This document shows positions 3,755-39,800 of a stretch of DNA of 64,000 nt, in pieces. The first letter of the stretch is position 1. Each line of letters begins with the position of its first letter. The notes below the pieces were generated by a model that ran no database searches, was not told the DNA's origin, and saw only the letters and a list, made by a program, of their open reading frames with translations. Position numbers and translations under genes: made by a program. This stretch comes from Macrostomum hystrix (taxonomy: Eukaryota > Animalia > Platyhelminthes), in assembly GCA_950097015.1 (NCBI GenBank), contig CATNEN010000025.1, positions 8,742,001 to 8,806,000 on the forward strand, read 5' to 3'.

Positions 3755-3755
3755 G

Positions 3756-3766: not shown

Positions 3767-3788
3767 GCCATCGCAGCCAACGCGGGGC

Positions 3789-8296: not shown

Positions 8297-8465
8297 CTAG
8301 TGTCTTGCCGCTCGGGCATTAGCGCTACCTTAGGTATAGCCCGAACAGCGTGGAAAATACCTATTCTCACCCTCATAACTTACGCTACCATCCCCCCCAA
8401 ATACTCAGCTCACCAATCCCAAATCCAACAAATAGAGAGAGAGCTGAGAGGTCTGCTACACTTGA

Positions 8466-9950: not shown

Positions 9951-10089
9951 GAGAAAATGTCTAGTCGCTCTAGTAGATTAAAAATTCATTCGCTTATCCA
10001 CTCTCTTATCCGAGTTCAACTGGTATTCGTATTAATTCATTTCGCCTTGGTGTTGGTATATTTTTCACATAATCTCCATTACTACAAGT

Positions 10090-10208
10090 AATCTCTGCAT
10101 TAATTGCATTCTCTGCATTAATCTCTGCATTAATCTCTGCATTAATCTCTGCATTAATTGCATTCTCTGCATTAATCTCTGCATTAATTGCATTAATCTC
10201 TGCATTAA
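10090..10208. repeat. Short remnant of the 12/18-bp (tctgcattaatc / tctgcattaattgcattc) minisatellite
   Basis: Same motif as the 1.1-1.5 kb arrays in units 2-4 but only a few units long. Confidence 0.9.
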
Positions 10209-11949
10209 GAAAGAAAAATCTAAAGCCTGAGGACAGGTCGCTGACTAGCTATTGTAATTTGTAACAGAGTATGATGAGCTGACATTAATAATTGTATTCA
10301 GAAATGGACTACAAGTCAAAAAACTAAAAAATACCCAGCGGGAAAGCCTACCTCGAATCTAGCTGAATGTAACTCTAGTTTTTAGGATAGGCTTGAATTT
10401 TCTTTTTAGTGCACCAAAGATGCTTTTTGCATCAAAATCATGCACCAAAAAATCGTTCAGTTTCAGAAAAATCGGCCAAACAAAATTTTAACTTAAAATA
10501 GCAAGAATAAGTCTAGTTATATTCTAGCTATATAGTGTCTGTCGTTTTTCGAGAAAACTATTTTTTGTTTTAAAATATTTTCATAGCACAGAATAACAAA
10601 ACTTTACAATTATATTTTTGTTCTTACGCGAAACAAAGTCTGGGTTGTAAAATAGCAATCTCTTAATTAAGTATGATAATAAAAAAGAAAAAATTGAAAC
10701 GTCTTACCATTGGTACAGTCCATTTTTTAACTTTTCTTGTGTTCTCGCGCGCCGACTAACTAGCAAGCCTACATTTTATACTATAGATTTGACTGGTTCC
10801 TACGTCTCGCTTTTTTTGGTGGAAATTACCAAGGTACGGAAATGTTAAAACCTCTATCAGAACGTTTACAACTCTTATGTGTTTCTTTCTCATTTTGAAC
10901 TTTTTATTATTACTTATTTCGATACAGCAATTATGTACAATATAATGTTGTAGGTATTGCTAATGTAGCTATTTAGCTGGTCAATCAAAGCACTTTGCTG
11001 AGTTTTTTAATCAGAATATACATTTCAACTAGCTAAGCTAATATACAAATCAACGAAAATATACAAATCAGTTCCTTTAAAAGTATTTCGAGTTAGTGAC
11101 GTGACATTTTTAAAAGAAATGTTTATTTAAATTGAACTATTTTAAGAAGATAGATTATAAATTGTATTAGGAATTTAAGGGATTTAGTTTCATTAATTTT
11201 AACTCTTCAAAAAATACACACAGTAGAAACTCGAATTATTTTATGCATTGATCCCAGGAAGGAAGTATTAGAGCAAACAAAAAGCAGTTGCTAATATAGC
11301 TATCCAACCCTTTTCCTGAATTCAAAAGGAAATCAATAAAATTATTTGAAATCTTTGAAAGTGAAATATCCAAACTTATTTTGTCAGAAGAGATAACCAG
11401 AAAAACAATTCTCTTTTAGCTTAGCATCATTTTATATAATTAATATCTTTAATAACGCTTTTATATTCACTTTTTTATGGAAATCAAATATAATTATTCA
11501 TGTACAACTTAGTAGTCTAGCCTTTTCACTAGAATTCATGATGCAATAATTATTGGAATCGGCATTCAGCCAGCCAAGAATTTAACCTTTTTTGGCCTCT
11601 CATTAAATGCATTAGGCAAACTCGTTTTTCGAATATTTAATACCTTTAGAATAAAGGCACATTGTCGAAAATGTCAATGTGTCTTGCGAGTAACATTTGG
11701 ACTGTTTAGAAAAAAACACGACCAATTTTGGTTGAGGCATGCAGCCTGTAGAGCGACGTTCGACAGACAGACAGACAGACTTTAGAGATTTAGTATAGGT
11801 GGATGGATGGACTAGCAATTTTAGCCCCCTCTGGGCAGCGGAAACCGGATTTTGGGATCTATAAATTCCCCTCCTTTTTCAAGGTAGGCCTAAAGTACGC
11901 TAATAAACACATCAAAATATTTTTATGGTTTCATTTAGTGACACTAGAT

Positions 11950-12410: not shown

Positions 12411-12821
12411 ATAAGCTGCCCTGAAGCAGCTAACATTTAAATGGCAATCAGGACGATTTATGAATAGTTCTTCTTGTTCTTCGCTGAAATGGGGGCGAAC
12501 CTTGCTTAAGGGGACATTGGTTCTATTCTTAAGAGGGGCATTGTTGGTTCTCTGCAATTGGGGGCATTGGTTTTCTGCTAAAGATGAATTATTTCTTACT
12601 AGTATCACTTACATTTACTAATTAGAGATTTGGTAAAGGTGGATGGATGGATAGGTGGGTTTTTTATTACTACTACTACTGTTGCGTAGTAGTATCGAAG
12701 TAATATCGAAGTAGGCTTACTAGGAGAGCAATACAAGATGTACTTTTATGAGGCACAAACTTTTGCATCCTAACATCATAAATCTAATTTTTGAATTCTG
12801 TTTCAGAACTGAAAGCTTAAC

Positions 12822-15800
12822 ATGACTACAAAGCTGAGCTCATTAATCGTTATTTCTCTGCTGCTGATCCGTAAGTGAAGTGGCTTGTTCGTTGAGGTTA
12901 CATAATGATATTGATTATTAATTATATTCGCTGATTACACTTGCCCGTTGGAGCTACATGTGCAACACAGCACAGCCGTAGCTATTGCGCGGCTCATCTG
13001 AAGGCAGCATGCAGCTGTTCAGTCCATGGACCGGGGGCCACACCTACCCTCAATTACCAGCTAGTACCCGTTTAACAGCTGGGTGAACTGAAGCAATGCT
13101 GAGTGAGTTGTCCTGCTAGTGGACACGAATTGTTCCAGCGAAGTCGGAATCGAACCCCCGACCTTCAAGTCGATTAGTTTGAGAAAACCACTAGGCTACA
13201 AACCCTGATTTCATATAATTTTATTTAAAATGAGTTCTGCTAAAATCTGTGCTACTAATTATTTATTAAACATTTTCAGCTACTGCCAGGTCTGATGATT
13301 TTCACTGCGTGCACGGCGCAACCCACGAAGCGGAAGCCAAAATTGGAGACATAAACGCGATTAGGGTGAGTAGTATGTTGCAAACGGCCTTTATCGACCA
13401 GAAGATAAGAAATCCTTAGAATAAAGATTCCTATGTACTGAGTACGTAAGCGATGCCTTAAGAATAGCCAAGTAAAGCGAGTTTTATTAGCACCCAGTTG
13501 GGTCAGATTTGCAGCCAATGACAATGGACAGCGCTTCCAAAGGCTGTGTGCCTGTACGTGGACTGAGGAGGCCGCGACTCCCCTCAAAAGTTTTTATCCG
13601 AGCTAATGCTGGCACTAGTTATATAGATGGCTAAATGTGAAGAAAATGCTTTTTAAACGACTTGCTCAACCTCCAAGACACATTTAGCTTCTATTCGTGC
13701 GGTTCTATCCAGTCAGCTGCAAGGAGCCAGGATAAAATAAAGCTGCGTCTGCTGTTTCAGGTGATGACGTATGTCCGAATTGATCCGGGCTATAGCAAGA
13801 ACCTGGAGTGCACGTGGACTCTGAAGGCGATCAACTATGACCAGCCCAGACAGATGTACATTGACGTGCCCGTGGTAGACTTTGACAACAATATTGACCC
13901 GTTTTGCAACAAAACCGACGTGTTCAGCTTCTGGCATAAGTACAACGAGAGTGAGTGGCTTGGCTTAAGACAAAAGTTTCCTCTAAGTTTCCTCTCAACC
14001 CTCGACAATTCAACACTCCTATCAAGGAGAAATCATTTATAGTAATAATTCAACTAAAACTACGAGTCACAGTAATTTCGTCGGCTTTCGATGCAAATTA
14101 AAACTCTAACGTGGAAGTACAAGCAGGCAATGTGTGGCTTTTTATTAAGGAAAATGTGGTGCTTTCGTTTTGGCTTTACGAGTGTAATTTCGTTACTCTA
14201 TAAATATTGCGAACATCTCTGTTTAATTCTTATTGAGTATTCACAACAGCTGCTATCAGCCGACTGCACACATTTCAGCTGATTCGCGGCAGGAGTCCTG
14301 GTGCAGTGAATCGTCCGTGTCACGCAGTTTCCAATTCTTGCCGTTCAGAAGGCAAATAATCAACTTGTGGGACTCGTGAGTAGCACTGCAGCTTCTTACT
14401 GAGCTCTCTTATGAGAATGCGAGTTGAGACCCTGCTGCCTCACTTACCACTTCACTCTGCAGGTCGTACTACCTGACTGCGCAATTCCGGTCTGACAATG
14501 AGCAAGTCCGCTCCGATGCCAAGGGATTGCAGTTGGATGTGCAGGTGCTGGACCCAGATTATTGCCACCTGAAAATGATGGATCTCGATAACTACTGCTA
14601 CCTGGTCACTCCTGAGAATGTGTCGCTAGCTCAATCCAATCAGGTTGGAAAACTCTTCCTCGGCAACTTTTTCACTGTCCGAGGCGCCTCTTCTGGCCGG
14701 GATATCTTAGACTTTCTGCGCAGATTCTCTGAGAGAAGTACGCATTTCTTTTTTGAATTTCTGATGAGGATATTTTTGCTCAATTGTGCTCAATCTTGTC
14801 ACCTCTTTGCGCTTCCCTCAGACAAAGCCAGGAAAGACGAGTATCCATACGAGTCGCCACTGGCCCTGACTAATCTCAGACTGTGGACCGGCTACTTTGT
14901 GAACGAATCCTCCTTCAGCGAGGAGGACCCGGTCATGTTTTACTCAGATCCGATAGACGACTGCATTGTCAAGCAAGTGAAAGTGTGAGTGCTGCTTCTC
15001 TATCCCGAGTCTAGTCTAAAGGATATTGTAAATATCATATGGTTTATGGCCAGGCAACGATTCGATGCCAGCTCTGATCCAGTTCAGCCAGATTCCTAAA
15101 ACCAAGGGCGACCTGCACCCGCAGCTGTTCCGCACCTGCGACATCGCGCCGCCAACAACGACAACTACAGCGCCGCCAACAACGACTACGACTCCGGAAC
15201 CAACGACAACTACAGCGCCGCCAACAACGACTACGACTCCGGAACCAACGACAACTACAGCGCCGCCAACAACGACTACGACTCCGGAACCAACGACAAC
15301 TACAGCGCCGCCAACAACGACTACGACTCCGGAACCAACGACAACTACAGCGCCGCCAACAACGACTACGACTCCGGAACCAACGACAACTACAGCGCCG
15401 CCAACAACGACTACGACTCCGGAACCAACGACAACTACAGCGCCGCCAACAACGACTACGACTCCGGAACCAACGACAACTACAGCGCCGCCAACAACGA
15501 CTACGACTCCGGAACCAACGACAACTACAGCGCCGCCAACAACGACTACGACTCCGGAACCAACGACAACTACAGCGCCGCCAACAACGACTACGACTCC
15601 GGAACCAACGACAACTACAGCGCCGCCAACAGCGACCACGACTCCGGAACCAACGACAACTACAGCGCCGCCAACAACGACTACGACTCCGGAACCAACG
15701 ACAACTACAGCGCCGCCAACAACGACTACGACTCCGGAACCAACGACAACTACAGCGCCGCCAACAACGACTACGACTCCGGAACCAACGACAACTACAG

Positions 15801-16747
15801 CGCCGCCAACAACGACTACGACTCCGGAACCAACGACAACTACAGCGCCGCCAACAACGACTACGACTCCGGAACCAACGACAACTACAGCGCCGCCAAC
15901 AACGACTACGACTCCGGAACCAACGACAACTACAGCGCCGCCAACAACGACTACGACTCCGGAACCAACGACAACTACAGCGCCGCCAACAACGACTACG
16001 ACTCCGGAACCAACGACAACTACAGCGCCGCCAACAACGACTACGACTCCGGAACCAACGACAACTACAGCGCCGCCAACAACGACTACGACTCCGGAAC
16101 CAACGACAACTACAGCGCCGCCAACAACGACTACGACTCCGGAACCAACGACAACTACAGCGCCGCCAACAACGACTACGACTCCGGAACCAACGACAAC
16201 TACAGCGCCGCCAACAACGACTACGACTCCGGAACCAACGACAACTACAGCGCCGCCAACAACGACTACGACTCCGGAACCAACGACAACTACAGCGCCG
16301 CCAACAACGACTACGACTCCGGAACCAACGACAACTACAGCGCCGCCAACAACGACTACGACTCCGGAACCAACGACAACTACAGCGCCGCCAACAACGA
16401 CTACGACTCCGGAACCAACGACAACTACAGCGCCGCCAACAACGACTACGACTCCGGAACCAACGACAACTACAGCGCCGCCAACAACGACTACGACTCC
16501 GGAACCAACGAAAACTACAGCGCCGCAAACAACGACTACGACTCCGGAACCAACGACAACTACAGCGCCGCCAACAACGACTACGACTCCGGAACCAACG
16601 ACAACTACAGCGCCGCCAACAACGACTACGACTCCGGAACCAACGACAACTACAGCGCCGCCACCAATCAGAGCAGTGCCGTCAGCGGCAATACTATCAT
16701 TATTATTGATTTTGTTGTTGCCCTTGTTATCATCGTGGCTATTGTGA
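12822..16747 (+). CDS. CUB + C-type-lectin-like + mucin-stalk protein, copy 1 (divergent; exon 7 acceptor deleted, possibly secreted or a pseudogene)
   Basis: Hand-built exons 12822-12870, 13280-13365, 13761-13950, 14279-14375, 14463-14737, 14822-14984, all GT-AG with compatible phases. Signal peptide MTTKLSSLIVISLLLI; CUB-like YSKNLECTWTL..C..D..WC..FRSD..GLQL; CTLD-like YCYLV..LWTGY..DDCIV. About 111 bp missing at 15046-15049 relative to the other copies. Confidence 0.65.
12911..13203 (-). mobile_element. tRNA-derived CORE-type SINE in intron 1 (copies 25117-25410, 36925-37218, 49208-49501)
   Basis: Minus strand: box A TAGCCTAGTGG, box B GGTTCGATTCC, CORE-like ...cagcattgcttcagttcacccagctgttaaacggg, AT-rich tail. 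Confidence 0.8.
15146..16662 (+). repeat. 45-bp coding VNTR (APPTTTTTPEPTTTT), 33 units plus one 24-bp partial
   Basis: Unit count derived from ORF length. Confidence 0.95.
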
Positions 16748-16874
16748 TCGGTGTCGTTGTCTACTTTAGTCGTCAAAGAGGACAGCAGCCGCCATCAACT
16801 AATGGGGACTAGCCGCCACTGCGGGGTAATCAGAAGGAGAAAAAGGCCAGAAGCCGCTACTGGGGACGAACACT

Positions 16875-17311
16875 CGGGATTTCAAAAGCGATAGAAACGC
16901 TGTGGCTAAGAGTGTCGGCTTGACTGTGGACAATGTCGAAGGCACTTTCTGAAGTCTGTTTGGTGGGCGCTTTTACTCATAATTTTGCATTGGCTAACAG
17001 CGTTGCTTAATTTTGTTTTGTTTATAAAGACAGAAATGTTTTTACGATCGCTTATTTCCGGTCTGCGAAGGAAGGAAAACCGGAATTGTCATTTTTCTGT
17101 TTTCATTTGAAATCTAAAATAATCTGTAATGCATGCTGAAGAAGCAGAAGTGCCCCATTGTCAGTCGACCTTTCGAACCCCCGCGCGTGCGCGTATCTAG
17201 CTTGTAATTGCGATCCCCGCGACCCAGTTCCTGTATTCCCATGTTTTACTTCTCTGTTTAGTAGTAATTGGTGATGGAGCTAATGATATATTGATAAGGT
17301 TCCGCAATTAA
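16875..17311. repeat. Dispersed repeat B (array copy; also at +12001, +23899, +36182)
   Basis: Homologous to 8739-9276 outside the array. Confidence 0.75.
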
Positions 17312-17685
17312 ATTTATATTTCCCGAACATAGAATCCTTTTCCCCGGATTCCTATGATTCGAAATCCCCCATCCCCGGATCATTAATTGGTTAACTTGAC
17401 TTGCTACATATCGAATTAAAGTAAGGATGCGAGAGGAAGCAGTCTATCTATTTGTGTGGTTATTATTATCATTAGTTAGAGGTTAGGATATAATTCTCCA
17501 TCCTCAATACCGTTTTCTGATTGTTAGTTGTTAGATTGTTTCGTAATTGATTGTAGTAATTTGTCTGCAGCAATATATTTGAAGCAATACCTGTCTTTAA
17601 TTTCACTATTCTAATTATACGTTCCTTAAATATTTGGGCTTAAGTTATTATTGTAGTGTCTGTTATTAATGCTTCTGATGACAGC

Positions 17686-18005
17686 TGTTGTATCTTAAAT
17701 AACTGACGCAACGGAGATTCAGATTTGTTAGACTTAGAGTAATAAGGAAAACACGCCGATAGGCGGCACTCGGCAGGCAGACGAATAGGAGTGTGTATTT
17801 GATATATTATAGCAATAGCCGTACGATATACGCATGAGTGCAGAGGTCGGGGCTTTTATTTATAGGCCCAAAGGCGTGTGGAGAGAGCATTCTAGAAAGT
17901 TACTAAAAATAGACTACACGGGAAAGTTCTGGAACCAGTGATGGACTTAACGCCTTACGACAAAGAATAGAAATTTCTGGAAAGTTCCCGGAAATTACAG
18001 CAACA
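17686..18005 (-). mobile_element. Probable solo LTR, 320 bp (copies 29687-30006, 41585-41904, 53868-54187)
   Basis: TGTTG...CAACA termini; minus-strand TATA cctataaataaaa; flanks ACAGC / ATAGT may be a decayed 5-bp TSD. Confidence 0.55.
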
Positions 18006-18429
18006 ATAGTCTCAACAGCTGCAGCGACCCTTTTGACCCTTTCGGCCAATCGGCAATTTATTGGCCGATTTATAATATTTGTGAAGTTAAAATAGGAGGC
18101 CGCATCAAGAAAAAGATGTAGCTAGTTTAACCTGTCCTCAGGTGACGGCAATTCTTTCGGACTGTTCTAGACCTAGTGCCACGGCCATAGTATTCGCTAT
18201 ACCATTATCTTAGTTCCTTTCGGCTTAGGCTCTATAGGTTCTTTAGGTTCTCAGTGCAGCTTTTTCGAAACAGTTGCAACTAGTTAGCTGATTTAAAAGT
18301 AATTAAGCTAGTCATTTTGATCAAATCAAAATGCAAAAGTACTGAGAACACGTCTAGTCCTTTATAAAGCTGAGCTGCGGAGCATGCTCCATTTTATCTA
18401 AGATTGCAATCTCTGCTTGAACAAACACA

Positions 18430-18735
18430 TGGGCAACGTTGCGAACACGTTGTCGGGCCATTGTCATGTTCCTGTGCCGCATCGCCAAGATCACCAAACT
18501 GAGCAGCGTCACTCTCAGGATGCTGTACAGGGCCTACGGTGAGAGTGCTCTCACCTACGGCGCCCCAATCTTGACTCTGATCTGCGTCACCAACCAGATC
18601 AAGCTGCAAAAGATCTAAACCCTTGCTCTGCGCATCTGCTATGGTGTGCCTTCTTACCTGAGCACCGAATACCTTCACAAACTGGCCGACATGCCAATGC
18701 TCTCAGCCAGAGAAAGCAGCTCGGTGTGGCCTGCA
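18430..18735 (+). mobile_element. Jockey/I-like LINE 3' RT fragment (copies 30431-30736, 42329-42634, 54612-54917)
   Basis: LRMLYRAYGESALTYGAPI...KLQKI*TLALRICYGVPSYLSTEYLHKLADMP matches the post-RT LYK..YG..LQ.IQN..LR...P.Y...LH pattern; internal stop. Confidence 0.75.
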
Positions 18736-18864
18736 TGCATGCCTTTTTATTTCAATTTTTATTTCAATATTTCAATTTTTATTAGATCCCTTCTTTGTGC
18801 GGGATTTCCCCTGTATATTTCTGCCTATTTTATCTCCCAATGCGTGCCTAAATATAGCCTTGCA

Positions 18865-19189
18865 AATATTGAATATTTTTTTGTTTCATTAAGGCTCAAT
18901 ATTCGCATAAAATAAGCCAAATCAAATCGAGTGTATATATATTATGAATTTCGATTAAATCCAATAATAGTCTGCGGCAGAGTTTTTCGAAACTGATCAG
19001 CAGCCCCAGTCAAATAGGGAATTCGTTTTAACAACAACCTATTATACCCTTGCCTCAACCATAACCCTAAACCTAAACCTAACCCTAAACCAAACCGTAA
19101 CCCTAAACCTAACCTTAATGTTGTGACTGATTGTGTGAGTACACTTGCCCTGTGAGTAAACCTAGCGTGAGTCACTTTATACACAAAAT
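18865..19189. repeat. Dispersed repeat A with interstitial telomere-like tract (taaccctaaacc)
   Basis: Homologous to 8466-8738; present once per unit. Confidence 0.75.
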
Positions 19190-19498
19190 ACAAGATACTA
19201 AATTGTGTATTTAGTATCTCCGTAATTAACCCGTCCAGTTTAACTAATCTTTAGCGGTATTCTTTAATTATTTGCGCGAATTCACTGAACAAGTTTCCAA
19301 GAAATTCGACTACTGCTTAATTCGACTTCTTTTTCTATTCCGGTATCACGCCGTATGCTACTATGGACTATGCTACTGTAAATATTTACTGCTTTGCCTT
19401 TATCACTTATTAGACTGACGTAATATTTTATTCCTATGTTACAGTTCTTTTCATTATGACGTATTTAAATGATGTGCTCTGTGGCTGCTATCTGCAAT

Positions 19499-19802
19499 TA
19501 ATAATTAATAATTGATTACACCTGCCCCAATTGGGTCAGATGTGCAGCCGACAGCACAGCCGCAGCTAATGCGCGGCGCATCTGAAGGCTGCGTACAGCT
19601 GTTCAGTCCATGGACTGGGGGGACGCCACACCCACCTTCAATTATCCCAGCTGATGCTGGTACCCATTTAACAGCTGGGTGAACTGAAGCAATGCAGAGT
19701 TAAGTGTCTTGCTAAAGGACACAAATTGTTTCAGGGGAGTCGGGAATCGAACCCCCGACCTTCAAGTCGTGAGTCCGACGCCCTAACCACTAGGCTACAA
19801 CC
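19499..19802 (-). mobile_element. tRNA-derived CORE-type SINE, better preserved copy (copies 31500-31803, 43398-43701, 55681-55984)
   Basis: Minus strand: GGTTGTAGCCTAGTGGTTAGGGCGTCGGACTCACGA..GGTTCGATTCCC head, then GTGTCCTTTAGCAAGACACTTAACTCTGCATTGCTTCAGTTCACCCAGCTGTTAAATGGG, which aligns by eye to the MIR CORE consensus; (aatt)n tail. Confidence 0.85.
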
Positions 19803-20010
19803 TCTGTTCAATCTGCAATTAAAATAGGCCTACTTTGTCTATAGTCGGCTAGCTAGCTAACGATTAAATGCTGAACAGCGAATTATATAACTATTTGACA
19901 AGCTCCTATGATTTGGCATTGCAAGCATATATGGAGCTATGCAGTAAATAAAAAACAGGCTAGACCTATTTCAGTTCTTATTGATTGAACATAATCTTCA
20001 TTACAACAAG

Positions 20011-21284
20011 TAATATCTGCATTAATTGCATTCTCTGCATTAATCTCTGCATTAATTGCATTCTCTGCATTAATCTCTGCATTAATCTCTGCATTAATCT
20101 CTGCATTAATTGCATTCTCTGCATTAATCTCTGCATTAATTGCATTCTTTGCATTAATCTCTGCATCAATTGCATTCTCTGCATTAATCTCTGCATCAAT
20201 TGCATTCTCTGCATTAATATCTGCATTAATCTCTGCATTAATATCTGCATTAATTGCATTCTCTGCATTAATCTCTGCATTAATTGCATTCTCTGCATTA
20301 ATCTCTGCATTAATTGCATTCTCTGCATTAATCTCTGCATTAATCTCTGCATCAATTGCATTCTCTGCATTAATCTCTGCATTAATCTCTGCATTAATTG
20401 CATTCTCTGCATTAATCTCTGCATTAATCTCTGCATTAATTGCACTCTCTGCATTAATCTCTGCATTAATCTCTGCATTAATTGCATTCTTTGCATTAAT
20501 CTCTGCATTAATCTCTGCATTAATCTCTGCATTAATCTCTGCATTAATCTCTGCATTAATTGCATTCTCTGCATTAATCTCTGCATTAATTGCATTCTCT
20601 GCATTAATATCTGCATTAATTGCATTCTCTGCATTAATCTCTGCATTAATCTCTGCATTAATTGCATTCTCTGCATTAATCTCTGCATTAATTGCATTCT
20701 CTGCATTAATCTCTGCATTAATTGCACTCTTTGCATTAATCTCTGCATTAATTGCATTCTCTGCATTAATCTCTGCATTAATCTCTGCATTAATCTCTGC
20801 ATTAATTGCACTCTTTGCATTAATCTCTGCATTAATTGCATTCTCTGCATTAATCTCTGCATTAATTGCATTCTCTGCATTAATCTCTGCATTAATTGCA
20901 TTCTCTGCATTAATCTCTGCATTAATTGCATTCTCTGCATTAATCTCTGCATTAATTGCATTCTCTGCATTAATCTCTGCATTAATTGCATTCTCTGCAT
21001 TAATCTCTGCATTAATTGCATTCTCTGCATTAATATCTGCATTAATTGCATTCTCTGCATTAATATATGCATTAATTGCATTCTCTGCATTAATCTCTGC
21101 ATTAATTGCATTCTCTGCATTAATCTCTGCATTAATTGCATTCTCTGCATTAATCTCTGCATTAATTGCATTCTCTGCATTAATCTCTGCATTAATTGCA
21201 TTCTCTGCATTAATCTCTGCATTAATTGCATTCTCTGCATTAATCTCTGCATTAATTGCATTCTCTGCATTAATCTCTGCATTA
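20011..21284. repeat. 12/18-bp composite minisatellite, unit 2
   Basis: Interspersed tctgcattaatc and tctgcattaattgcattc units with point variants. Confidence 0.95.
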
Positions 21285-21468
21285 AAAATAAAAACTACAA
21301 TTAATATCTTCAAACTGTCATCCATGTTTTTGAGCTACATCTCTTTTTTATAAATGCTTCTGAAGTTAAATTGCATTTAGCGACTCGTAATTATCCCAAT
21401 TAACTTTCCCAACCCCTGTCATGCCTTCTAAATGATTTCATAAAAAATGGCTTCGATTTTTGGGGGAG

Positions 21469-23043
21469 TGTCGTGAAATCACGAGTTATTATTAACCAAT
21501 CCTGTTCACTGTACACCCTTGTGGTAATCTCCTTTTCTAACCCCGGTTATTTGCCAGCTCAGCTCCACTCTTTGATCTCTATTATTGATTTTCCCCCGTG
21601 TCCCTTTACACTCTGACCCCTCCAGTCTAGCGTCTGCACCCATCATGTCTCTCCCTCTGCGCTCGTTATCGTGTGTACACCCTAGGGTTTTCATACCCTC
21701 ATTTGTCTCTCCTCGCTGTAGACCCCATCTGTCGCTTGTCCTTAAATTAAATCGGTCACGGAACTCAGATCCAAGATTTATTGTGGAAACGTTAAACGTT
21801 CTTCACTGGAATTCTTCTTCAGGAATTCTTCGCTGGAAGAGTCCGTGGTAGTTAAAAGCGGAAATTTTTTTCCTAATGTAGTGTCAGCTTGTTTGCCCTT
21901 CTATCTCCCCGTGTTATTATTCAGTACTTATTTTTAGACACGTGTTTTTTGCTAAAAGTCACCCACGCCAAGCCGGGCGGACCAGCCGGGGGAACGGACG
22001 CCCACCACCCCGCGAGCGCTACCCCTGGGCTACAGTCCCGGCCAATCAGCGAGCGACCCGGCCTCACTACCTGTCTACCCTCGGCAAGAAGCTACCCCGG
22101 GGCTCAGAACGGCGGTTGCAAGTCTACTGTGATTTGTCGCCTTGGCTACAGCCAGGCATCCACCTCGCCGATCGACCTAATTTGGGGTTAAAATGACTCT
22201 ATAAAAGGAAGCGTGTTTTTGCAGTGACTTTTATCGTTCTCCGCAATTCGCCTCACACTGTGAGAAGCACGTGCAAACCAGTCCACTTTGTTTTGTCTCT
22301 CCCCGCCCGACCACGCTCCGCTTGTTCAGTTAGGTAGCTTTCGGCGCTACGCGTCTTGAGAGTGCGCCGCTGACAAGGGTGGTCTAGATAGGCGCTTGTT
22401 GTCGAAGTCAGTACGTGCTCTCTTCGGAGACTCCGCCGTCACACAGAAGGAGTGCCAACCGATAGGATCTGTCGGGGCAGCGCTGAAAGCAGAGACAACC
22501 GGAGCCTCTCGGGAAGAGTAGGGCGCTGATTAGGCCAGTTTAAGTAAAATTGTTATATCCAAATTGTTAGACTAAACTTGCTTTTCACTGTGAGCGCGCT
22601 ATAATTTATTTCCGTGTGAACATCCTTATTCTGTCAATGGAACTTTTAAATCAAGTAAACGAGATTAAAATCAATTCCTGCTCTTATCTGGAATCTTAGC
22701 GAGTCACAACAGATTAAATCACTCACAATCAATTTATTCGAGTCTTCGCGTTCATACTGTGTTATTCTTTTTCATTGGGAGTTTCGCCGGGCCGGAGGAA
22801 CACGCGGGTCCCATCGCTTATCTATTCCGCTTCGCTCGCTACCGCAGTCTCTATAAACGCTATATAATTCCAGATTCCCTGCTGCTATTGAAACCATTGG
22901 TAGGACACCGACCCCGGTGAATAGTCGCTAGCTTTAAATTCCTCACGCTCCAGCTAGGACATTCATTTTATTACACTAACGAATTTTAAATGAATAGAGA
23001 TGATAAACTTAGGGATTTGACTAAATCAATGAAGTATGTAACA
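21469..23043 (+). mobile_element. LTR-like element preceded by a polypurine tract (copies 33277-34851, 45560-47134; absent from unit 1)
   Basis: gggggag|TGTCGTG start; CCAAT at about 22042 and TATA ctctataaaagg at about 22197; possible ends at ..gaaacCA (22896, followed by t-TGG) or ..tgtaaCA (23043). No coding domains seen. Confidence 0.45.
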
Positions 23044-25027
23044 AGAAGAAAAATCTAAAGCCTGCGGACTGGTCGCTGACTAGCTATTGTAATTTGTAAC
23101 AGAGTATGATGAGCTGACATTAATAATTGTATTCAGAAATGGACTACAAGTCAAAAAACTAAAAAAATACCCAGCGGGAAAGCCTACCTCGAATCTAGCT
23201 GAATGTAACTCTAGTTTTTAGGATAGGTTTGAATTTTCTTTTTAGTGCACCAAAGATGCTTTTTGCATCAAAATCATGCACCAAAAAAATCGTCCAGTTT
23301 CAGAAAAATCGGCCAAACAAAAGTTTAACTTAAAATAGCAAGAATAAGTCTAGTTATATATTCTAGCTATATAGTGTCTGTCGTTTTTCGAGAAAAAAAA
23401 ATTTTGTTTTAAAATATTTTCATAGCACAGAATAACAAAACTTTACAATTATATTTTTGTTCTTACGCGAAACAAAGTCTGGGTTGTAAAATAGCAATCT
23501 CTTAATTAAGTATGATAATAAAAAAGAAAAAAGTGAAACGTCTTACCATTGGTACAGTTCATTTTTTAACTTTTCTTGTGTTCTCGCGCGCCGACTAACT
23601 AGCAAGCCTACATTTTATACTATAGATTTGACTGGTTCCTACGTCTCGCTTTTTTTGGTGGAAATTACCAAGGTACGGAAATGTTAAAACCTCTATCAGA
23701 ACGTTTACAACTCTTATGTGTTTCTTTCTCATTTTGAACTTTTTATTATTACTTATTTCGATACAGCAATTATGTACAATATAATGTTGTAGGTATTGCT
23801 AATGTAGCTATTTAGCTGGTCAATCAAAGCACTTTGCTGAGTTTTTTTAATCAAAATATACATTTCAACTTGCTAAGGTTTGCTAAGGTAATAGACAAAT
23901 CAACGAAAATATACAAATCAGTTCCTTTAAAAGTATTTCGAGTTAGTGGCGTGACATTTTTTTAAAGAAATGTTTATTTAAATTGAACTATTTTAAGAAA
24001 ATATATTATAAATTGTATTAGGAATTTAAGGGATACGTTGCTGTCTTAAAAAACTATCCTAATTGCATGCAATGCAGAAGATGTTGAACTATTTAGATCC
24101 CCATTTTACCTTACAATATGTGATTGTTGTTTTTTACATCTTGTGATATGATTTTGTTAGTATGCTAAAAAGTTTTTTAAACTCTTTTTAGTTTTCTACT
24201 TGGCAATTTTAAACAGCCCGTGCTGTTTTACACCTTCTTGTAAAATCTTGATATCTTATGAAACTTTGCTGAAATTCAAAAGCTGAAGGAGCAAGCTATT
24301 GAAAATGTAATTCTTATCTATCATTGTTTTTTATTCACCGACTGGAATTACCTGGGTGGGACATCGGTTTTGGACCATATTAGAAGTGGAGGTGTCTATT
24401 TTATGCACCTGTTGTTTCTGCGGTTGAGTCCTATGAAAGGCAATATTTACTCGATTCTTAAATACCTTGTATGATTGTGGCTGTTTTAGTCTTTTGCAGC
24501 TGCTTTAAGAATACTTTATTATTGCTTTTGTATGACAGTTCTTCGTGAGTCACGTTAATCATCTATCTATTTTTCTAACATAGGTATTGTACTTGATTTT
24601 TTATTAACCTCATTTAACCTCATGGCGTCTTGTATCCAGCTATGTGCAATTTTCTAAGTAATTTTTGTGTATTCTAGTCATATTTATCTAAGTCACTTTG
24701 ATAAATGTGGGACTGTTTTATGTGGGACTTCATTTTATCTATTCAAAAAACATCTGAAAAATGTCCTTTTGCACAAACATCTTTGCAATCATTTGTATTG
24801 ATGTTCATTTTTATCTGCTTATTTGTGAAAGTATAGTATATAAAGTATAGTTAATATGAGTACCAATACTGTTGCGTTTTATTGAGTGGATTTGCTTGTT
24901 GTTATTAAAAAAATCGAAGTAGGCTTACTAGGAGCAATACAAGATGTACTTTTATGAGGCACAAACTTTTGCATCCTAACATCATAAATCTAATTCTTTA
25001 ACTCTGTTTCAGAACTGAAAGCTTAAC

Positions 25028-28000
25028 ATGACTACAAAACTGAGCTCATTAATCGTTATTTCTCTGCTGCTGATCGGTAAGTTAAGTGGCTTGTTCGTTG
25101 AGGTTACATAATGATATTGATTATTAATTATATTCGCTGATTACACTTGCCCGTTGGGGCTACATGTGCAACACAGCACAGCCGTAGCTATTGCGCGGCT
25201 CATCTGAAGGCAGCATGCAGCTGTTCAGTCCATGGACCGGGGGCCACACCTACCCTCAATTACCAGCTAGTACCCGTTTTACAGCTGGGTGAACTGAAGC
25301 AATGCTGAGTGAGTTGTCCTGCTAGTGGACACGAATTGTGCCAGCGAAGGCCGAATCGAACCCCCGACCGTCAAGTCGATTAGTTTGAGAAAACCACTAG
25401 ACTACAAACCTGATTTCATATAATTTTATTAAAAATCTGTACTATTAATTATTTATTAAACATTGTCAGATACTGCCAGGTCTGCGGTTTGGCACTGCAT
25501 ACACAACGTACGCCACGAAGACTTCGTCAAAATCGGAGACATCAACGCGATTAGGGTGAGTAGTATGTTGCAAACGGCCTTTATCGACCAGAAGATAAGA
25601 AATCCTTAGATTAAAGGATACTTATGTACTGAGTACGTAAGCGATGCCTTAAGAATAGCCAAGTAGGCGAGTTTTATAAGCACCCAGTTGTGTCAGATTT
25701 GCAGCCAATAACAATAGACTGCGCTTCCAAAGGCTGTGTGCCTGTACGTGCACTGAGGAGGCCGCGACTCCCCACAAAAGTTTTTATCCGAGCTAATGCT
25801 GGCACTAGTTATATAGATGGCTGAATGTGAAGAAAATGCTATTTAAACGACTTGCTCAACCCCCAAGACACATTTAGCTTCTATTCGTGCGGTTCTATCC
25901 AGTCAGCTGCAAGGAGCCAGGATAAAATAAAGCTGCGTCTGCTGTTTCAGGTGATAACGTATGTCCGAGGCGATCCGGGCTATAGGAAGAACCTGGAGTG
26001 CAGGTATCTTCTGAGAGTGATCAACTATGACCAGCCCAGACAGATGTACATTGACGTGCCCGTGGTGGACTTTGACAACAATACTGACCCGTTTTGCAAC
26101 AAAACCGACGTGTTCAGCTTCTGGCATAAGTACAACGAGAGTGAGTGGCTTGGCTTAAGACAAAAGTTTCCTCTAAGTTTCCTCTCAACCCTCGACAATT
26201 CAACACTCCTATCAAGGAGAAATCGTTTATAGTAATTCAACTAAAACTCCGAGTCACAGTAATTTCGTCGGCTTTCGATGCAAATTAAAACTCTAACGTG
26301 GAAGTACAAGCAGGCAATGTGTGACTTTTTATTAAGGAAAATGTGGTGCTTTCGTTTTGGCTTTACGAGTGTAATTTTATTACTCTATAAATATTGCGAA
26401 CATCTCTGTTTAATTATTATTGAGTATTCACAACAGCTGCTATCAGCCGACTGCACACATTTCAGCTGCTTGGCGGCGGGAGTCCTGGTGCAGTGAATCG
26501 TCCGTGTCACGCAGTTTCCAATTCTTGCCGTTTAGACGGCAAATAATCAACTTGTGGGACTCGTGAGTAGCACTGCAGCTTCTTACTGAGCTCTCTTATG
26601 AGAATGCGAGTTGAGACCCTGCTGCTTCACTACCCACTTCACTCTGCAGGTCGTACTACCTGACTGCGGAATTCCAGTCTGACAATGAGCAAGTCCGCTC
26701 CGATGCCAAGGGATTGCAGATGAATGTGCAGGTGCTGGGCAGAAATTGCCACAGGAACATGCTGTATCTCGATAACTACTGCTACCTGGTCACTCCTGAG
26801 AATGTGTCGCCAGCTCAATCCAATCAGGTTGGAAAACTCTTACTCGGCAACTTTTTCACTGTCCGAAACGCCTCTTCTGGCCGGGATATCTTAGACTTTC
26901 TGCGCAGATTCTCTGAGAGAAGTACGCATTTCTTTTTCGAATTTCTGATGAGGATATTTTTGCTCAATTGTGCTCAATCTTGTCACCTCTTTGCGCTTCC
27001 CTCAGACAAAGCCAGGAAAGACGAGTATCCTTACGAGTCGCCACTGGCCCTGACTAATCTCAGACTGTGGACCGGCTACTTTGTGAACGAATACTCCTTC
27101 AGCGAGGAGGACCCGGTCATGTTTTACTCAGATCCGATAGACGACTGCATTGTCAAGCAAGTGAAAGTGTGAGTGCTGCTTCTCTATCCTGATTCTAGTC
27201 TAAAGGATATTGTAAATATCATATGGTTTAGAATGTCAATCATTCGATTTCAGGACTCGTGAGATTTTGACCGGCTGTAATAAAAACCCAGCGCCTGTAG
27301 CCCTTAATTGGCTTAGCAACGGCAGCGTGCATTTTTCCTGTGTGCCAGGCAACGATTCGATGCCAGCTCTGATCCAGTTCAGCCAGATTCCTAAAACCAA
27401 GGGCGACCTGCACCCGCAGCTGTTCCGCACCTGCGACATCGCGCCGCCAACAACGACTACGACTCCGGAACCAACGACAACTACAGCGCCGCCAACAACG
27501 ACTACGACTCCGGAACCAACGACAACTACAGCGCCGCCAACAACGACTACGACTCCGGAACCAACGACAACTACAGCGCCGCCAACAACGACTACGACTC
27601 CGGAACCAACGACAACTACAGCGCCGCCAACAGCGACCACGACTCCGGAACCAACGACAACTACAGCGCCGCCAACAACGACTACGACTCCGGAACCAAC
27701 GACAACTACAGCGCCGCCAACAACGACTACGACTCCGGAACCAACGACAACTACAGCGCCGCCAACAACGACTACGACTCCGGAACCAACGACAACTACA
27801 GCGCCGCCAACAACGACTACGACTCCGGAACCAACGACAACTACAGCGCCGCCAACAACGACTACGACTCCGGAACCAACGACAACTACAGCGCCGCCAA
27901 CAACGACTACGACTCCGGAACCAACGACAACTACAGCGCCGCCAACAACGACTACGACTCCGGAACCAACGACAACTACAGCGCCGCCAACAACGACTAC

Positions 28001-28748
28001 GACTCCGGAACCAACGACAACTACAGCGCCGCCAACAACGACTACGACTCCGGAACCAACGACAACTACAGCGCCGCCAACAACGACTACGACTCCGGAA
28101 CCAACGACAACTACAGCGCCGCCAACAACGACTACGACTCCGGAACCAACGACAACTACAGCGCCGCCAACAACGACTACGACTCCGGAACCAACGACAA
28201 CTACAGCGCCGCCAACAACGACTACGACTCCGGAACCAACGACAACTACAGCGCCGCCAACAACGACTACGACTCCGGAACCAACGACAACTACAGCGCC
28301 GCCAACAACGACTACGACTCCGGAACCAACGAAAACTACAGCGCCGCAAACAACGACTACGACTCCGGAACCAACGACAACTACAGCGCCGCCAACAACG
28401 ACTACGACTCCGGAACCAACGACAACTACAGCGCCGCCAACAACGACTACGACTCCGGAACCAACGACAACTACAGCGCCGCCAACAACGACTACGACTC
28501 CGGAACCAACGAAAACTACAGCGCCGCAAACAACGACTACGACTCCGGAACCAACGACAACTACAGCGCCGCCAACAACGACTACGACTCCGGAACCAAC
28601 GACAACTACAGCGCCGCCAACAACGACTACGACTCCGGAACCAACGACAACTACAGCGCCGCCACCAATCAGAGCAGTGCCGTCAGCGGCAATACTATCA
28701 TTATTATTGATTTTGTTGTTGCCCTTGTTATCATCGTGGCTATTGTGA
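25028..28748 (+). CDS. CUB + C-type-lectin-like + mucin-stalk surface protein, copy 2 (783 aa predicted)
   Basis: Exons 25028-25076, 25470-25555, 25951-26140, 26466-26562, 26650-26921, 27006-27168, 27254-28748; GT-AG, phases compatible, total 2352 nt with no internal stop; ends AVPSAAILSLLLILLLPLLSSWLL. Confidence 0.8.
27441..28663 (+). repeat. 45-bp coding VNTR, 27 units
   Basis: Unit count from ORF length. Confidence 0.95.
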
Positions 28749-31700
28749 TCGGTGTCGTTGTCTACTTTAGTCGTCAAAGAGGACAGCAGCCGCCATCAAC
28801 TAATGGGGACTAGCCGCCACTGCGGGGTAATCAGAAGGAGAAAAAGGCCAGAAGCCGCTACTGGGGACGAACACTCGGGATTTCAAAAGCGATAGAAACG
28901 CTGTGGCTAAGAGTGTCGGCTTGACTGTGGACAATGTCGAAGGCACTTTCTGAAGTCTGTTTGGTGGGCGCTTTTACTCATAATTTTGCATTGGCTAACA
29001 GCGTTGCTTAATTTTGTTTTGTTTATAAAGACAGAAATGTTTTTACGATCGCTTATTTCCGGTCTGCGAAGGAAGGAAAACCGGAATTGTCATTTTTCTG
29101 TTTTCATTTGAAATCTAAAATAATCTGTAATGCATGCTGAAGAAGCAGAAGTGCCCCATTGTCAGTCGACCTTTCGAACCCCCGCGCGTGCGCGTATCTA
29201 GCTTGTAATTGCGATCCCCGCGACCCAGTTCCTGTATTCCCATGTTTTACTTCTCTGTTTAGTAGTAATTGGTGATGGAGCTAATGATATATTGATAAGG
29301 TTCCGCAATTAAATTTATATTTCCCGAACATAGAATCCTTTTCCCCGGATTCCTATGATTCGAAATCCCCCATCCCCGGATCATTAATTGGTTAACTTGA
29401 CTTGCTACATATCGAATTAAAGTAAGGATGCGAGAGGAAGCAGTCTATCTATTTGTGTGGTTATTATTATCATTAGTTAGAGGTTAGGATATAATTCTCC
29501 ATCCTCAATACCGTTTTCTGATTGTTAGTTGTTAGATTGTTTCGTAATTGATTGTAGTAATTTGTCTGCAGCAATATATTTGAAGCAATACCTGTCTTTA
29601 ATTTCACTATTCTAATTATACGTTCCTTAAATATTTGGGCTTAAGTTATTATTGTAGTGTCTGTTATTAATGCTTCTGATGACAGCTGTTGTATCTTAAA
29701 TAACTGACGCAACGGAGATTCAGATTTGTTAGACTTAGAGTAATAAGGAAAACACGCCGATAGGCGGCACTCGGCAGGCAGACGAATAGGAGTGTGTATT
29801 TGATATATTATAGCAATAGCCGTACGATATACGCATGAGTGCAGAGGTCGGGGCTTTTATTTATAGGCCCAAAGGCGTGTGGAGAGAGCATTCTAGAAAG
29901 TTACTAAAAATAGACTACACGGGAAAGTTCTGGAACCAGTGATGGACTTAACGCCTTACGACAAAGAATAGAAATTTCTGGAAAGTTCCCGGAAATTACA
30001 GCAACAATAGTCTCAACAGCTGCAGCGACCCTTTTGACCCTTTCGGCCAATCGGCAATTTATTGGCCGATTTATAATATTTGTGAAGTTAAAATAGGAAA
30101 CCGCATCAAGAAAAAGATGTAGCTAGTTTAACCTGTCCTCAGGTGACGGCAATTCTTTCGGACTGTTCTAGACCTAGTGCCACGGCCATAGTATTCGCTA
30201 TACCATTATCTTAGTTCCTTTCGGCTTAGGCTCTATAGGTTCTTTAGGTTCTCAGTGCAGCTTTTTCGAAACAGTTGCAACTAGTTAGCTGATTTAAAAG
30301 TAATTAAGCTAGTCATTTTGATCAAATCAAAATGCAAAAGTACTGAGAACACGTCTAGTCCTTTATAAAGCTGAGCTGCGGAGCATGCTCCATTTTATCT
30401 AAGATTGCAATCTCTGCTTGAACAAACACATGGGCAACGTTGCGAACACGTTGTCGGGCCATTGTCATGTTCCTGTGCCGCATCGCCAAGATCACCAAAC
30501 TGAGCAGCGTCACTCTCAGGATGCTGTACAGGGCCTACGGTGAGAGTGCTCTCACCTACGGCGCCCCAATCTTGACTCTGATCTGCGTCACCAACCAGAT
30601 CAAGCTGCAAAAGATCTAAACCCTTGCTCTGCGCATCTGCTATGGTGTGCCTTCTTACCTGAGCACCGAATACCTTCACAAACTGGCCGACATGCCAATG
30701 CTCTCAGCCAGAGAAAGCAGCTCGGTGTGGCCTGCATGCATGCCTTTTTATTTCAATTTTTATTTCAATATTTCAATTTTTATTAGATCCCTTCTTTGTG
30801 CGGGATTTCCCCTGTATATTTCTGCCTATTTTATCTCCCAATGCGTGCCTAAATATAGCCTTGCAAATATTGAATATTTTTTTGTTTCATTAAGGCTCAA
30901 TATTCGCATAAAATAAGCCAAATCAAATCGAGTGTATATATATTATGAATTTCGATTAAATCCAATAATAGTCTGCGGCAGAGTTTTTCGAAACTGATCA
31001 GCAGCCCCAGTCAAATAGGGAATTCGTTTTAACAACAACCTATTATACCCTTGCCTCAACCATAACCCTAAACCTAAACCTAACCCTAAACCAAACCGTA
31101 ACCCTAAACCTAACCTTAATGTTGTGACTGATTGTGTGAGTACACTTGCCCTGTGAGTAAACCTAGCGTGAGTCACTTTATACACAAAATACAAGATACT
31201 AAATTGTGTATTTAGTATCTCCGTAATTAACCCGTCCAGTTTAACTAATCTTTAGCGGTATTCTTTAATTATTTGCGCGAATTCACTGAACAAGTTTCCA
31301 AGAAATTCGACTACTGCTTAATTCGACTTCTTTTTCTATTCCGGTATCACGCCGTATGCTACTATGGACTATGCTACTGTAAATATTTACTGCTTTGCCT
31401 TTATCACTTATTAGACTGACGTAATATTTTATTCCTATGTTACAGTTCTTTTCATTATGACGTATTTAAATGATGTGCTCTGTGGCTGCTATCTGCAATT
31501 AATAATTAATAATTGATTACACCTGCCCCAATTGGGTCAGATGTGCAGCCGACAGCACAGCCGCAGCTAATGCGCGGCGCATCTGAAGGCTGCGTACAGC
31601 TGTTCAGTCCATGGACTGGGGGGACGCCACACCCACCTTCAATTATCCCAGCTGATGCTGGTACCCATTTAACAGCTGGGTGAACTGAAGCAATGCAGAG

Positions 31701-36835: not shown

Positions 36836-39800
36836 ATGACTACAAAACTGAGCTCATTAATCGTTATTTCTCTGCTGCTGATCGGTAAGTTAAGTGGCTT
36901 GTTCGTTGAGGTTACATAATGATATTGATTATTAATTATATTCGCTGATTACACTTGCCCGTTGGGGCTACATGTGCAACACAGCACAGCCGTAGCTATT
37001 GCGCGGCTCATCTGAAGGCAGCATGCAGCTGTTCAGTCCATGGACCGGGGGCCACACCTACCCTCAATTACCAGCTAGTACCCGTTTTACAGCTGGGTGA
37101 ACTGAAGCAATGCTGAGTGAGTTGTCCTGCTAGTGGACACGAATTGTGCCAGCGAAGGCCGAATCGAACCCCCGACCGTCAAGTCGATTAGTTTGAGAAA
37201 ACCACTAGACTACAAACCTGATTTCATATAATTTTATTAAAAATCTGTACTATTAATTATTTATTAAACATTGTCAGATACTGCCAGGTCTGCGGTTTGG
37301 CACTGCATACACAACGTACGCCACGAAGACTTCGTCAAAATCGGAGACATCAACGCGATTAGGGTGAGTAGTATGTTGCAAACGGCCTTTATCGACCAGA
37401 AGATAAGAAATCCTTAGATTAAAGGATACTTATGTACTGAGTACGTAAGCGATGCCTTAAGAATAGCCAAGTAGGCGAGTTTTATAAGCACCCAGTTGTG
37501 TCAGATTTGCAGCCAATAACAATAGACTGCGCTTCCAAAGGCTGTGTGCCTGTACGTGCACTGAGGAGGCCGCGACTCCCCACAAAAGTTTTTATCCGAG
37601 CTAATGCTGGCACTAGTTATATAGATGGCTGAATGTGAAGAAAATGCTATTTAAACGACTTGCTCAACCCCCAAGACACATTTAGCTTCTATTCGTGCGG
37701 TTCTATCCAGTCAGCTGCAAGGAGCCAGGATAAAATAAAGCTGCGTCTGCTGTTTCAGGTGATAACGTATGTCCGAGGCGATCCGGGCTATAGGAAGAAC
37801 CTGGAGTGCAGGTATCTTCTGAGAGTGATCAACTATGACCAGCCCAGACAGATGTACATTGACGTGCCCGTGGTGGACTTTGACAACAATACTGACCCGT
37901 TTTGCAACAAAACCGACGTGTTCAGCTTCTGGCATAAGTACAACGAGAGTGAGTGGCTTGGCTTAAGACAAAAGTTTCCTCTAAGTTTCCTCTCAACCCT
38001 CGACAATTCAACACTCCTATCAAGGAGAAATCGTTTATAGTAATTCAACTAAAACTCCGAGTCACAGTAATTTCGTCGGCTTTCGATGCAAATTAAAACT
38101 CTAACGTGGAAGTACAAGCAGGCAATGTGTGACTTTTTATTAAGGAAAATGTGGTGCTTTCGTTTTGGCTTTACGAGTGTAATTTTATTACTCTATAAAT
38201 ATTGCGAACATCTCTGTTTAATTATTATTGAGTATTCACAACAGCTGCTATCAGCCGACTGCACACATTTCAGCTGCTTGGCGGCGGGAGTCCTGGTGCA
38301 GTGAATCGTCCGTGTCACGCAGTTTCCAATTCTTGCCGTTTAGACGGCAAATAATCAACTTGTGGGACTCGTGAGTAGCACTGCAGCTTCTTACTGAGCT
38401 CTCTTATGAGAATGCGAGTTGAGACCCTGCTGCTTCACTACCCACTTCACTCTGCAGGTCGTACTACCTGACTGCGGAATTCCAGTCTGACAATGAGCAA
38501 GTCCGCTCCGATGCCAAGGGATTGCAGATGAATGTGCAGGTGCTGGGCAGAAATTGCCACAGGAACATGCTGTATCTCGATAACTACTGCTACCTGGTCA
38601 CTCCTGAGAATGTGTCGCCAGCTCAATCCAATCAGGTTGGAAAACTCTTACTCGGCAACTTTTTCACTGTCCGAAACGCCTCTTCTGGCCGGGATATCTT
38701 AGACTTTCTGCGCAGATTCTCTGAGAGAAGTACGCATTTCTTTTTCGAATTTCTGATGAGGATATTTTTGCTCAATTGTGCTCAATCTTGTCACCTCTTT
38801 GCGCTTCCCTCAGACAAAGCCAGGAAAGACGAGTATCCTTACGAGTCGCCACTGGCCCTGACTAATCTCAGACTGTGGACCGGCTACTTTGTGAACGAAT
38901 ACTCCTTCAGCGAGGAGGACCCGGTCATGTTTTACTCAGATCCGATAGACGACTGCATTGTCAAGCAAGTGAAAGTGTGAGTGCTGCTTCTCTATCCTGA
39001 TTCTAGTCTAAAGGATATTGTAAATATCATATGGTTTAGAATGTCAATCATTCGATTTCAGGACTCGTGAGATTTTGACCGGCTGTAATAAAAACCCAGC
39101 GCCTGTAGCCCTTAATTGGCTTAGCAACGGCAGCGTGCATTTTTCCTGTGTGCCAGGCAACGATTCGATGCCAGCTCTGATCCAGTTCAGCCAGATTCCT
39201 AAAACCAAGGGCGACCTGCACCCGCAGCTGTTCCGCACCTGCGACATCGCGCCGCCAACAACGACTACGACTCCGGAACCAACGACAACTACAGCGCCGC
39301 CAACAACGACTACGACTCCGGAACCAACGACAACTACAGCGCCGCCAACAACGACTACGACTCCGGAACCAACGACAACTACAGCGCCGCCAACAACGAC
39401 TACGACTCCGGAACCAACGACAACTACAGCGCCGCCAACAACGACTACGACTCCGGAACCAACGACAACTACAGCGCCGCCAACAACGACTACGACTCCG
39501 GAACCAACGACAACTACAGCGCCGCCAACAGCGACCACGACTCCGGAACCAACGACAACTACAGCGCCGCCAACAACGACTACGACTCCGGAACCAACGA
39601 CAACTACAGCGCCGCCAACAACGACTACGACTCCGGAACCAACGACAACTACAGCGCCGCCAACAACGACTACGACTCCGGAACCAACGACAACTACAGC
39701 GCCGCCAACAACGACTACGACTCCGGAACCAACGACAACTACAGCGCCGCCAACAACGACTACGACTCCGGAACCAACGACAACTACAGCGCCGCCAACA

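Follow-up and report, generated by a model that had tools for sequence, protein, structure and literature searches.

The 64,000-nucleotide stretch of the Macrostomum hystrix genome analyzed here (the window; contig CATNEN010000025.1, positions 8,742,001 to 8,806,000) contains a tandem array of four units of ~12 kb with one gene per unit (ATG at 12822, 25028, 36836 and 49119), and our comparison of the first two gene copies shows that their exons are more diverged than their introns. The product is most likely a surface-tethered binding protein with a CUB domain at its tip, a degenerate C-type-lectin-like domain (CTLD), a Thr/Pro stalk of 400-500 residues and a membrane anchor, an architecture read from sequence, splicing and fold. 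As an explanation for the divergence we lean towards episodic diversifying selection on the CUB domain combined with patchwise gene conversion, after which copy 1 would have lost its function and the copy-2 unit would have been triplicated.

Divergence between copies 1 and 2

Over the 285 aligned codons of exons 1-6, the two copies show 38 amino acid replacements and an indel of one codon, with purely silent change in another 7 codons, exactly as an earlier note on this DNA had counted, and its figure of 21 differences in the 86 nt of exon 2 is exact as well. The same note had set exon 2 against intron 3, which does differ at 6 of 325 nt but is among the least diverged introns; the pooled introns are the fair baseline. 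Pooled exons differ at 62 of 857 positions (7.2%) and pooled introns at 40 of 1347 (3.0%; Fisher p=6e-6), an excess that remains when exon 2 is left out (p=0.009). Divergence is heterogeneous among the exons (p=3e-9), but not among the introns (p=0.71). The neutral baselines agree with each other, with differences at 2 of 98 fourfold sites, 3.0% of intron positions and 1.9% of the upstream spacer. Relative to the introns, nonsynonymous divergence is ~2.6-fold higher (p=1e-5), and the excess holds with every multiply hit codon counted once (p=0.0015). Second codon positions, which differ at 27 of 285 (9.5%), exceed both the introns (p=8e-6) and the fourfold sites (p=0.014). In exon 2 there are 10 replacements and 2 silent changes; exon-2 pairs with at least 7 replacements in the related species Macrostomum lignano (n=48, not independent of one another) all have at least 3 silent changes, with a mean of 7.1.

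The changes are clustered, as had been claimed, with 10 replacements falling in 15 codons (permutation p=0.0003). The CUB domain holds 26 replacements, the 10-codon linker 7 and the lectin-like part 4. The 46 codons of four patches account for 27 replacements and not one silent codon, compared with 11 and 7 in the other 239, although the patch boundaries were set after seeing the data, which tells against reading too much selection into this count. The remaining 239 codons are under purifying selection. Patch 3 lies in exon 4 and is given with that exon below; the other three are located in copy 1 as follows.

13294..13338, + strand: patch 1, codons 22-36, 10 replacements
13779..13829, + strand: patch 2, codons 52-68, loop and strand around Cys62
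14551..14583, + strand: patch 4, the CUB/lectin linker, 7 replacements and the codon indel, mostly derived in copy 1

Taking M. lignano as the outgroup, it is the intact copy 2 that has the derived exon-3 patch, and the derived linker is that of copy 1; the changes are therefore not due to decay of copy 1. Copy 1 patch 2 retains W64/T65 as in M. lignano. In spliced contigs, whose source may be another strain, species or paralog, codons 35, 63, 67 and 205 take a state seen in neither copy, and there is a third version of the linker as well. Four of the seven new variant sites fall on already variable codons (p=0.007) among the 40 best-supported read variants, a restriction that weakens this support for selection. 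In the standard CUB strand order, positions 35, 63, 65, 67, 113 and 148 would point outward from a single sheet, as the earlier note predicted.

That note had proposed diversifying selection, a claim that holds up against the intron and fourfold baselines and in the composition of the patches, but not in the whole-gene ratio of nonsynonymous to synonymous rates (dN/dS) or in the M. lignano paralogs. The results that weigh against selection are these. Whole-gene dN/dS is 1.19 by NG86 and 1.36 under the maximum-likelihood (ML) model M0 (p=0.41). The probability of 7 or fewer silent changes among 45 is 0.09-0.21; the ratio of 38 to 7 alone is no evidence of dN/dS above 1, and we reject it as proof, the estimates of 1.2-1.4 being not significantly different from 1. 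The comparison of site models M1a and M2a is significant for the copy 1-copy 2 pair (p=4.5e-9), also with a double-nucleotide rate of 10% (p=0.005), but the signal vanishes at a rate of 30%. M2a is highly significant for a M. lignano pair differing by a plain exon swap as well, which means that mosaicism confounds the test and that the significance it gives for copies 1 and 2 should not be read literally. Individual M. lignano exons have dN/dS of 0.3-0.5 and no positive class under M2a, and the site-by-site coincidence of variable positions between the window gene and M. lignano is not significant. One M. lignano pair differs by 26 replacements and 1 silent change, but M0 gives p=0.08 for it.

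Gene structure and predicted product

The gene has seven exons. Runs X5, X9 and X11 contain spliced contigs that show five of its GT-AG joints, and the same exons and intron phases occur in all M. lignano paralogs. A spliced contig of run X5 carries the end of the Macrostomum spliced leader, whose sequence was taken from PMC5173321, at acceptor 25011-25012. Three runs contain spliced family members, but each of the transcripts listed has a base at 26520 that is absent from both copies, and these transcripts therefore derive from other strains or paralogs. The read comparison needs at least 80% identity, and copy 1 exon 2, being 76% like copy 2, lies below this floor. Intron 5 (26922-27005; 14738-14821 in copy 1) is 84 nt long, in frame and stop-free, and its retention would add 28 residues; it is removed in the spliced contigs. 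The features of the array are listed below.

10211..11183, + strand: copy 1 upstream spacer, an older duplicate of the unit spacer with 19 of 989 nt substituted, the second neutral baseline of ~2%
12805..12806, + strand: putative trans-splice acceptor AG of copy 1, homologous to that of copy 2
12822..12870, + strand: copy 1 exon 1, signal peptide (alignment with copy 2)
12914..13207, + strand: repeat resembling a short interspersed element (SINE) within intron 1, present in copies 1-4 and 80% like a copy at 19497-19806
13280..13365, + strand: copy 1 exon 2, mature N-terminus and first CUB Cys, with the 21 differences from copy 2
13761..13950, + strand: copy 1 exon 3, CUB (alignment with copy 2)
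14279..14375, + strand: copy 1 exon 4, CUB, containing patch 3 (14281-14292, codons 110-113)
14463..14737, + strand: copy 1 exon 5, CUB end, linker and lectin-like start (alignment with copy 2)
14822..14984, + strand: copy 1 exon 6, differing from copy 2 at 2 of 163 nt
15046..15049, + strand: copy 1 deletion junction, exon-7 acceptor and first 30 exon-7 codons gone
15049..16747, + strand: copy 1 exon 7 remnant, 33 Thr/Pro repeats (15156-16667) and hydrophobic tail
25011..25012, + strand: copy 2 trans-splice acceptor AG, with the spliced-leader loose end on the run X5 contig
25028..25076, + strand: copy 2 exon 1 (alignment and spliced contigs)
25470..25555, + strand: copy 2 exon 2, patch 1 at 25484-25528 (alignment and spliced contigs)
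25951..26140, + strand: copy 2 exon 3, patch 2 at 25969-26019 (joints in X5, X9 and X11)
26466..26562, + strand: copy 2 exon 4, patch 3 at 26468-26479 (spliced contigs)
26650..26921, + strand: copy 2 exon 5, patch 4 at 26738-26767 (spliced contigs)
27006..27168, + strand: copy 2 exon 6 (spliced contigs)
27254..28748, + strand: copy 2 exon 7, lectin-like end, 27 Thr/Pro repeats (27441-28668), hydrophobic tail resembling a glycosylphosphatidylinositol (GPI) signal, stop; acceptor joint 27168/27254
28664..28813, + strand: shifted frame encoding a type I transmembrane helix with a short tail, similar to the anchor of M. lignano paralogs
36836..40646, + strand: copy 3, 29 repeats, preceded by the same sequence as in copy 2
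49119..52929, + strand: copy 4, 29 repeats, preceded by the same sequence as in copy 2

Between the 5' flank and the beginning of the mucin repeat, copies 2, 3 and 4 do not differ at all; outside this stretch they show 1-4 base differences per 3-4 kb, and repeat number also differs. The 5' half of copy 1 is ~5% diverged from copies 2-4, and 3' of the repeat it differs from them at 1-2 of 3180 nt. Upstream of copy 1, 8738-9282 is a remnant of the unit 3' region (95-98% to 16874-17317), which suggests that an additional gene copy formerly stood there.

Copy 1 is broken at its seventh exon by a 111-bp deletion that the earlier note overlooked: a match to copy-2 27231-27343 is lacking, 113 nt being replaced by 2 (net 111). 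The statement that all Cys are kept applies to exons 1-6, which preserve 7 of 7 Cys, the reading frame and every splice site up to the exon-6 donor, but Cys294 and Cys315 were lost with the deletion. Intron retention or use of the nearest cryptic acceptors leads to early stops or wrong frames, and a cryptic acceptor at 15087 restores the frame with much of the second domain missing; no joint from copy 1 exon 6 to a cryptic acceptor occurs among the contig joints listed. Copy 1 is therefore truncated or dead at present.

The encoded protein begins with a signal peptide and a domain of 150 residues; a second domain of ~170 residues follows, then a 15-residue Thr/Pro unit repeated 27-33 times, and the end is hydrophobic. 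The stalk is presumably O-glycosylated and the protein displayed at the cell surface. The CUB assignment of the first domain was borne out by structure comparison. An AlphaFold2 (AF2) model of the M. lignano segment P0022:26-175, made from an alignment that includes the window exons, has a predicted local distance difference test (pLDDT) score of 61, and all nine Foldseek matches of this N-terminal domain at E<=1e-3 are CUB-containing structures, which supports a predicted CUB jelly-roll beta-sandwich fold. The best matches are the CUB domains of C1r/C1s, MASP, TSG-6 and neuropilin (E 1e-4 to 1e-3, target template-modelling scores 0.64-0.70), which share with the M. lignano model two disulfides at the usual places, at 11-19% identity. 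Both copies and 12 of 12 aligned M. lignano genes preserve Cys26/62 and Cys94/117, which probably pair as these two disulfides. The Ca2+-binding CUB signature is Tyr/Glu/Asp/Asp in loops L3, L5 and L9; of this motif, Tyr56, Asp98 and Asp152 are present and the Glu is not clearly recognizable. The Ca2+-binding CUB subgroup is described in PMC8051872. No match to the Pfam CUB family PF00431 was obtained with the exons or homologues.

The claim of a CTLD stood less firmly. In a poor AF2 model of the whole ectodomain (pLDDT 43), helices and strands follow a CTLD-like order, matches to Mincle and DEC205 are weak, and ESM features point to a lectin-like domain (0.91-0.92, with 141 shared compared with 170 typical of true members). 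On the other hand, neither exons nor homologues match the Pfam lectin family PF00059, and the EPN/QPD and WND motifs, as well as the helix-1 to strand-5 disulfide, are absent from the translated domain. The nearest ESM Atlas clusters by features are nematode CUB plus C-type lectin proteins (0.92; Lectin_C with CUB). There is no match to these at the sequence level; unlike them, the window gene has a membrane anchor and a long stalk, and its second domain is without EPN/QPD/WND and without the canonical helix-1 Cys.

Homology searches were run exon by exon, one query being the stop-free read-through 26651-27166, and turned up homologues solely in M. lignano, in agreement with the earlier description of an uncharacterized family. 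A search of PDB sequences with the family profile gave no match, and no database protein matches exon 7. Neither the M. lignano gene identifiers nor the architecture was found in the literature, and the identifiers are also absent from two supplements. After the repeat (28640-28813, 16639-16812, 40538-40711 and 52821-52994), the in-frame tail is GPI-like and the transmembrane frame is one base off in all four copies, either a true frameshift or an assembly error.

Exon exchange and competing explanations

The M. lignano relatives (BOX15_Mlig016362, Mlig011208, Mlig004633, Mlig026576, Mlig029759, Mlig022503 and Mlig016910) are hypothetical genes, called 'CUB domain-containing protein' in UniRef. 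They share with the window gene the seven exons, intron phases, CUB Cys pattern, tandem clustering and a variable exon 2, but nucleotide identity is 72-80% and in conserved exon stretches alone, and most have a short stalk, an in-frame transmembrane helix and overall purifying selection; identity of the window gene with an annotated M. lignano gene was rejected. Repeats related to the intron-1 SINE-like element occur in their loci. Some paralogs (L002:39342-39632, L005:17148-17438 and L006 after 28745) are annotated with poly-Gln/Leu tails that look like the Thr/Pro stalk in a shifted frame. Between L001:14963-15170 and L003:15218-15425, exon 3 has 13 replacements and no silent change, and the next intron is identical over 230 nt.

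The ~9 M. lignano paralogs of this cluster (loci L001-L006) form a mosaic of exons: trees built from single exons conflict, and certain pairs that differ by 2-6% in exons 3-5 differ by 46% in exon 6. Two duplicates of paralog D (L002:148-1882 and L002:10523-12257) have a common in-frame stop in exon 3 and are identical at 2167 of 2172 nt; all five differences are nonsynonymous and lie in exon 2, and one duplicate carries the exact exon 2 of paralog E. These duplicates apparently reproduce the exon-only divergence in miniature without selection. Two dead genes can thus come to differ in one exon, so that a higher divergence of exons than of introns is no proof of selection in tandem families. 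The patchwise conversion that the earlier note offered as an alternative does operate in this family.

Conversion confined to exons could then explain the window without any positive selection: old paralogs alignable in their exons alone would exchange tracts that import exon differences and spare introns. Besides the mosaic and the D duplicates, this explanation can draw on 15 codons with two or three changed positions, on 17 adjacent exon differences where 4.5 are expected, on 2 of the 7 silent changes lying directly after patch 1, and on the extra transcript variants, which imply unseen close paralogs. An old neutral donor, however, should import silent changes too, and there are none in the 19 unchanged patch codons (p=0.014 if the donor's proportion of synonymous differences, pS, equals the nonsynonymous proportion, pN, of the patches; 0.1 at pS 0.2; fourfold sites are at 2%). 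Moreover, conversion shuffles variants and gives no account of donors that differ mostly by replacements. We regard conversion alone as possible, but rather unlikely.

Divergence of exons above introns between tandem paralogs is a well-known type of pattern, found also in snake-venom and abalone sperm genes. Primate L/M opsins show it as well (PMC3213168), but their synonymous sites exceed introns, whereas in the window gene fourfold sites equal introns. By analogy with these opsins, the copies could be older than their introns imply, with conversion homogenizing introns and most exons while selection shields distinct patches from erasure. The precedent in gibbon L/M opsins (PMC3213168) and the homogenized 3' halves of copies 1-4 favor this, as do DNA contigs of run X1 with copy-1 letters at 12 of 12 listed comparable sites and otherwise copy-2-like, although these may be a bubble-collapsed consensus. 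It is quite improbable, as a divergence of 2-3% is found alike in introns, at fourfold sites and in the upstream spacer, intron divergence is uniform, and silent sites within the patches are not raised.

The earlier note had also allowed for an untranscribed copy 1 whose changes reflect relaxed constraint. Copy 1 is indeed structurally broken, its exon-7 acceptor lost and most cryptic acceptors leading to stops or wrong frames, no cryptic-acceptor joint is among those listed, and overall dN/dS is near 1. Relaxation fails to explain the pattern, however, as it predicts equal divergence of exons and introns without clustering, whereas exons are 2.4-fold higher; besides, the Cys, frame and splice sites of copy 1 exons 1-6 are preserved, intact copy 2 is the one with the derived exon-3 patch, and some spliced contigs contain copy-1-like letters. 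As a sole cause it is largely refuted by the exon/intron excess, and we consider it very unlikely. An artefact, in which reads of other paralogs were polished into the exons and copies 2-4 over-expanded, would fit the near identity of copies 2-4 and, if this is the published M. hystrix assembly, its construction from long reads polished with short ones, but is extremely unlikely, as the differences preserve frame and Cys, both linker types occur in independent DNA and spliced contigs, and copies 2-4 vary in repeat number and a few bases.

Under the combination of selection and conversion that we favor, copies 1 and 2 would have split when neutral DNA was ~2-3% apart, after which the CUB domain and linker would have changed in short patches, several times faster there than neutral DNA and almost entirely by replacements. 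Episodic diversifying selection where the CUB domain contacts its ligand is the most likely cause, and short conversion tracts, seen in M. lignano, may also move variants among a larger tandem family here. Later, copy 1 would have lost its exon-7 acceptor, the copy-2-type unit would have been amplified three times, and the 3' halves homogenized.

The surrounding locus and a possible recognition role

Other elements of the window include an AT-rich 12/18-bp satellite in every unit, of varying length (20011-21285, 32012-33094, 43910-45376 and 10089-10208). A Ty3/Gypsy-like, apparently recent retrotransposon at 3518-8304 has 245-bp long terminal repeats (LTRs) 98.8% identical and a 5-bp target duplication. 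At 1797-2330 lies a coding-looking sequence that, judged by eye, resembles the C-terminal part of a superfamily 1 (SF1; MOV10/UPF1-like) helicase, and 58550-60470 is degraded non-LTR reverse-transcriptase-like sequence with a weak match to M. lignano L001.

The architecture suggests a role as a recognition receptor. Hydractinia Alr2 (PMC8282982) and further hypervariable surface families of invertebrates, among them Sp185/333 (PMC5103432), resemble the window gene in having clustered paralogs and distal-domain variation on a membrane protein; their folds differ, and the variation in the window is one between paralogs. By analogy, the binding partner would most likely be a variable foreign surface at the epithelium, of a microbe or parasite, a class to which we give somewhat less than an even chance; a partner of some other kind would be a weaker candidate, and sperm, ejaculate or mate tissue slightly weaker still. 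On a broader and doubtful reading, the window would be one end of a Macrostomum locus of several hundred kb for CUB/lectin-like stalked receptors, shaped by selection and exon-2-centered micro-conversion and serving self/non-self or mate/sperm recognition, undescribed in flatworms.

For the study of tandem families, our results call for caution, since exons more diverged than introns are insufficient as proof of selection. Very little is known of fast-evolving surface receptors in free-living flatworms, and Macrostomum allows RNA interference, transgenesis and the use of inbred lines, so that a receptor with a defined variable domain may provide a testable candidate for microbial or mate recognition.

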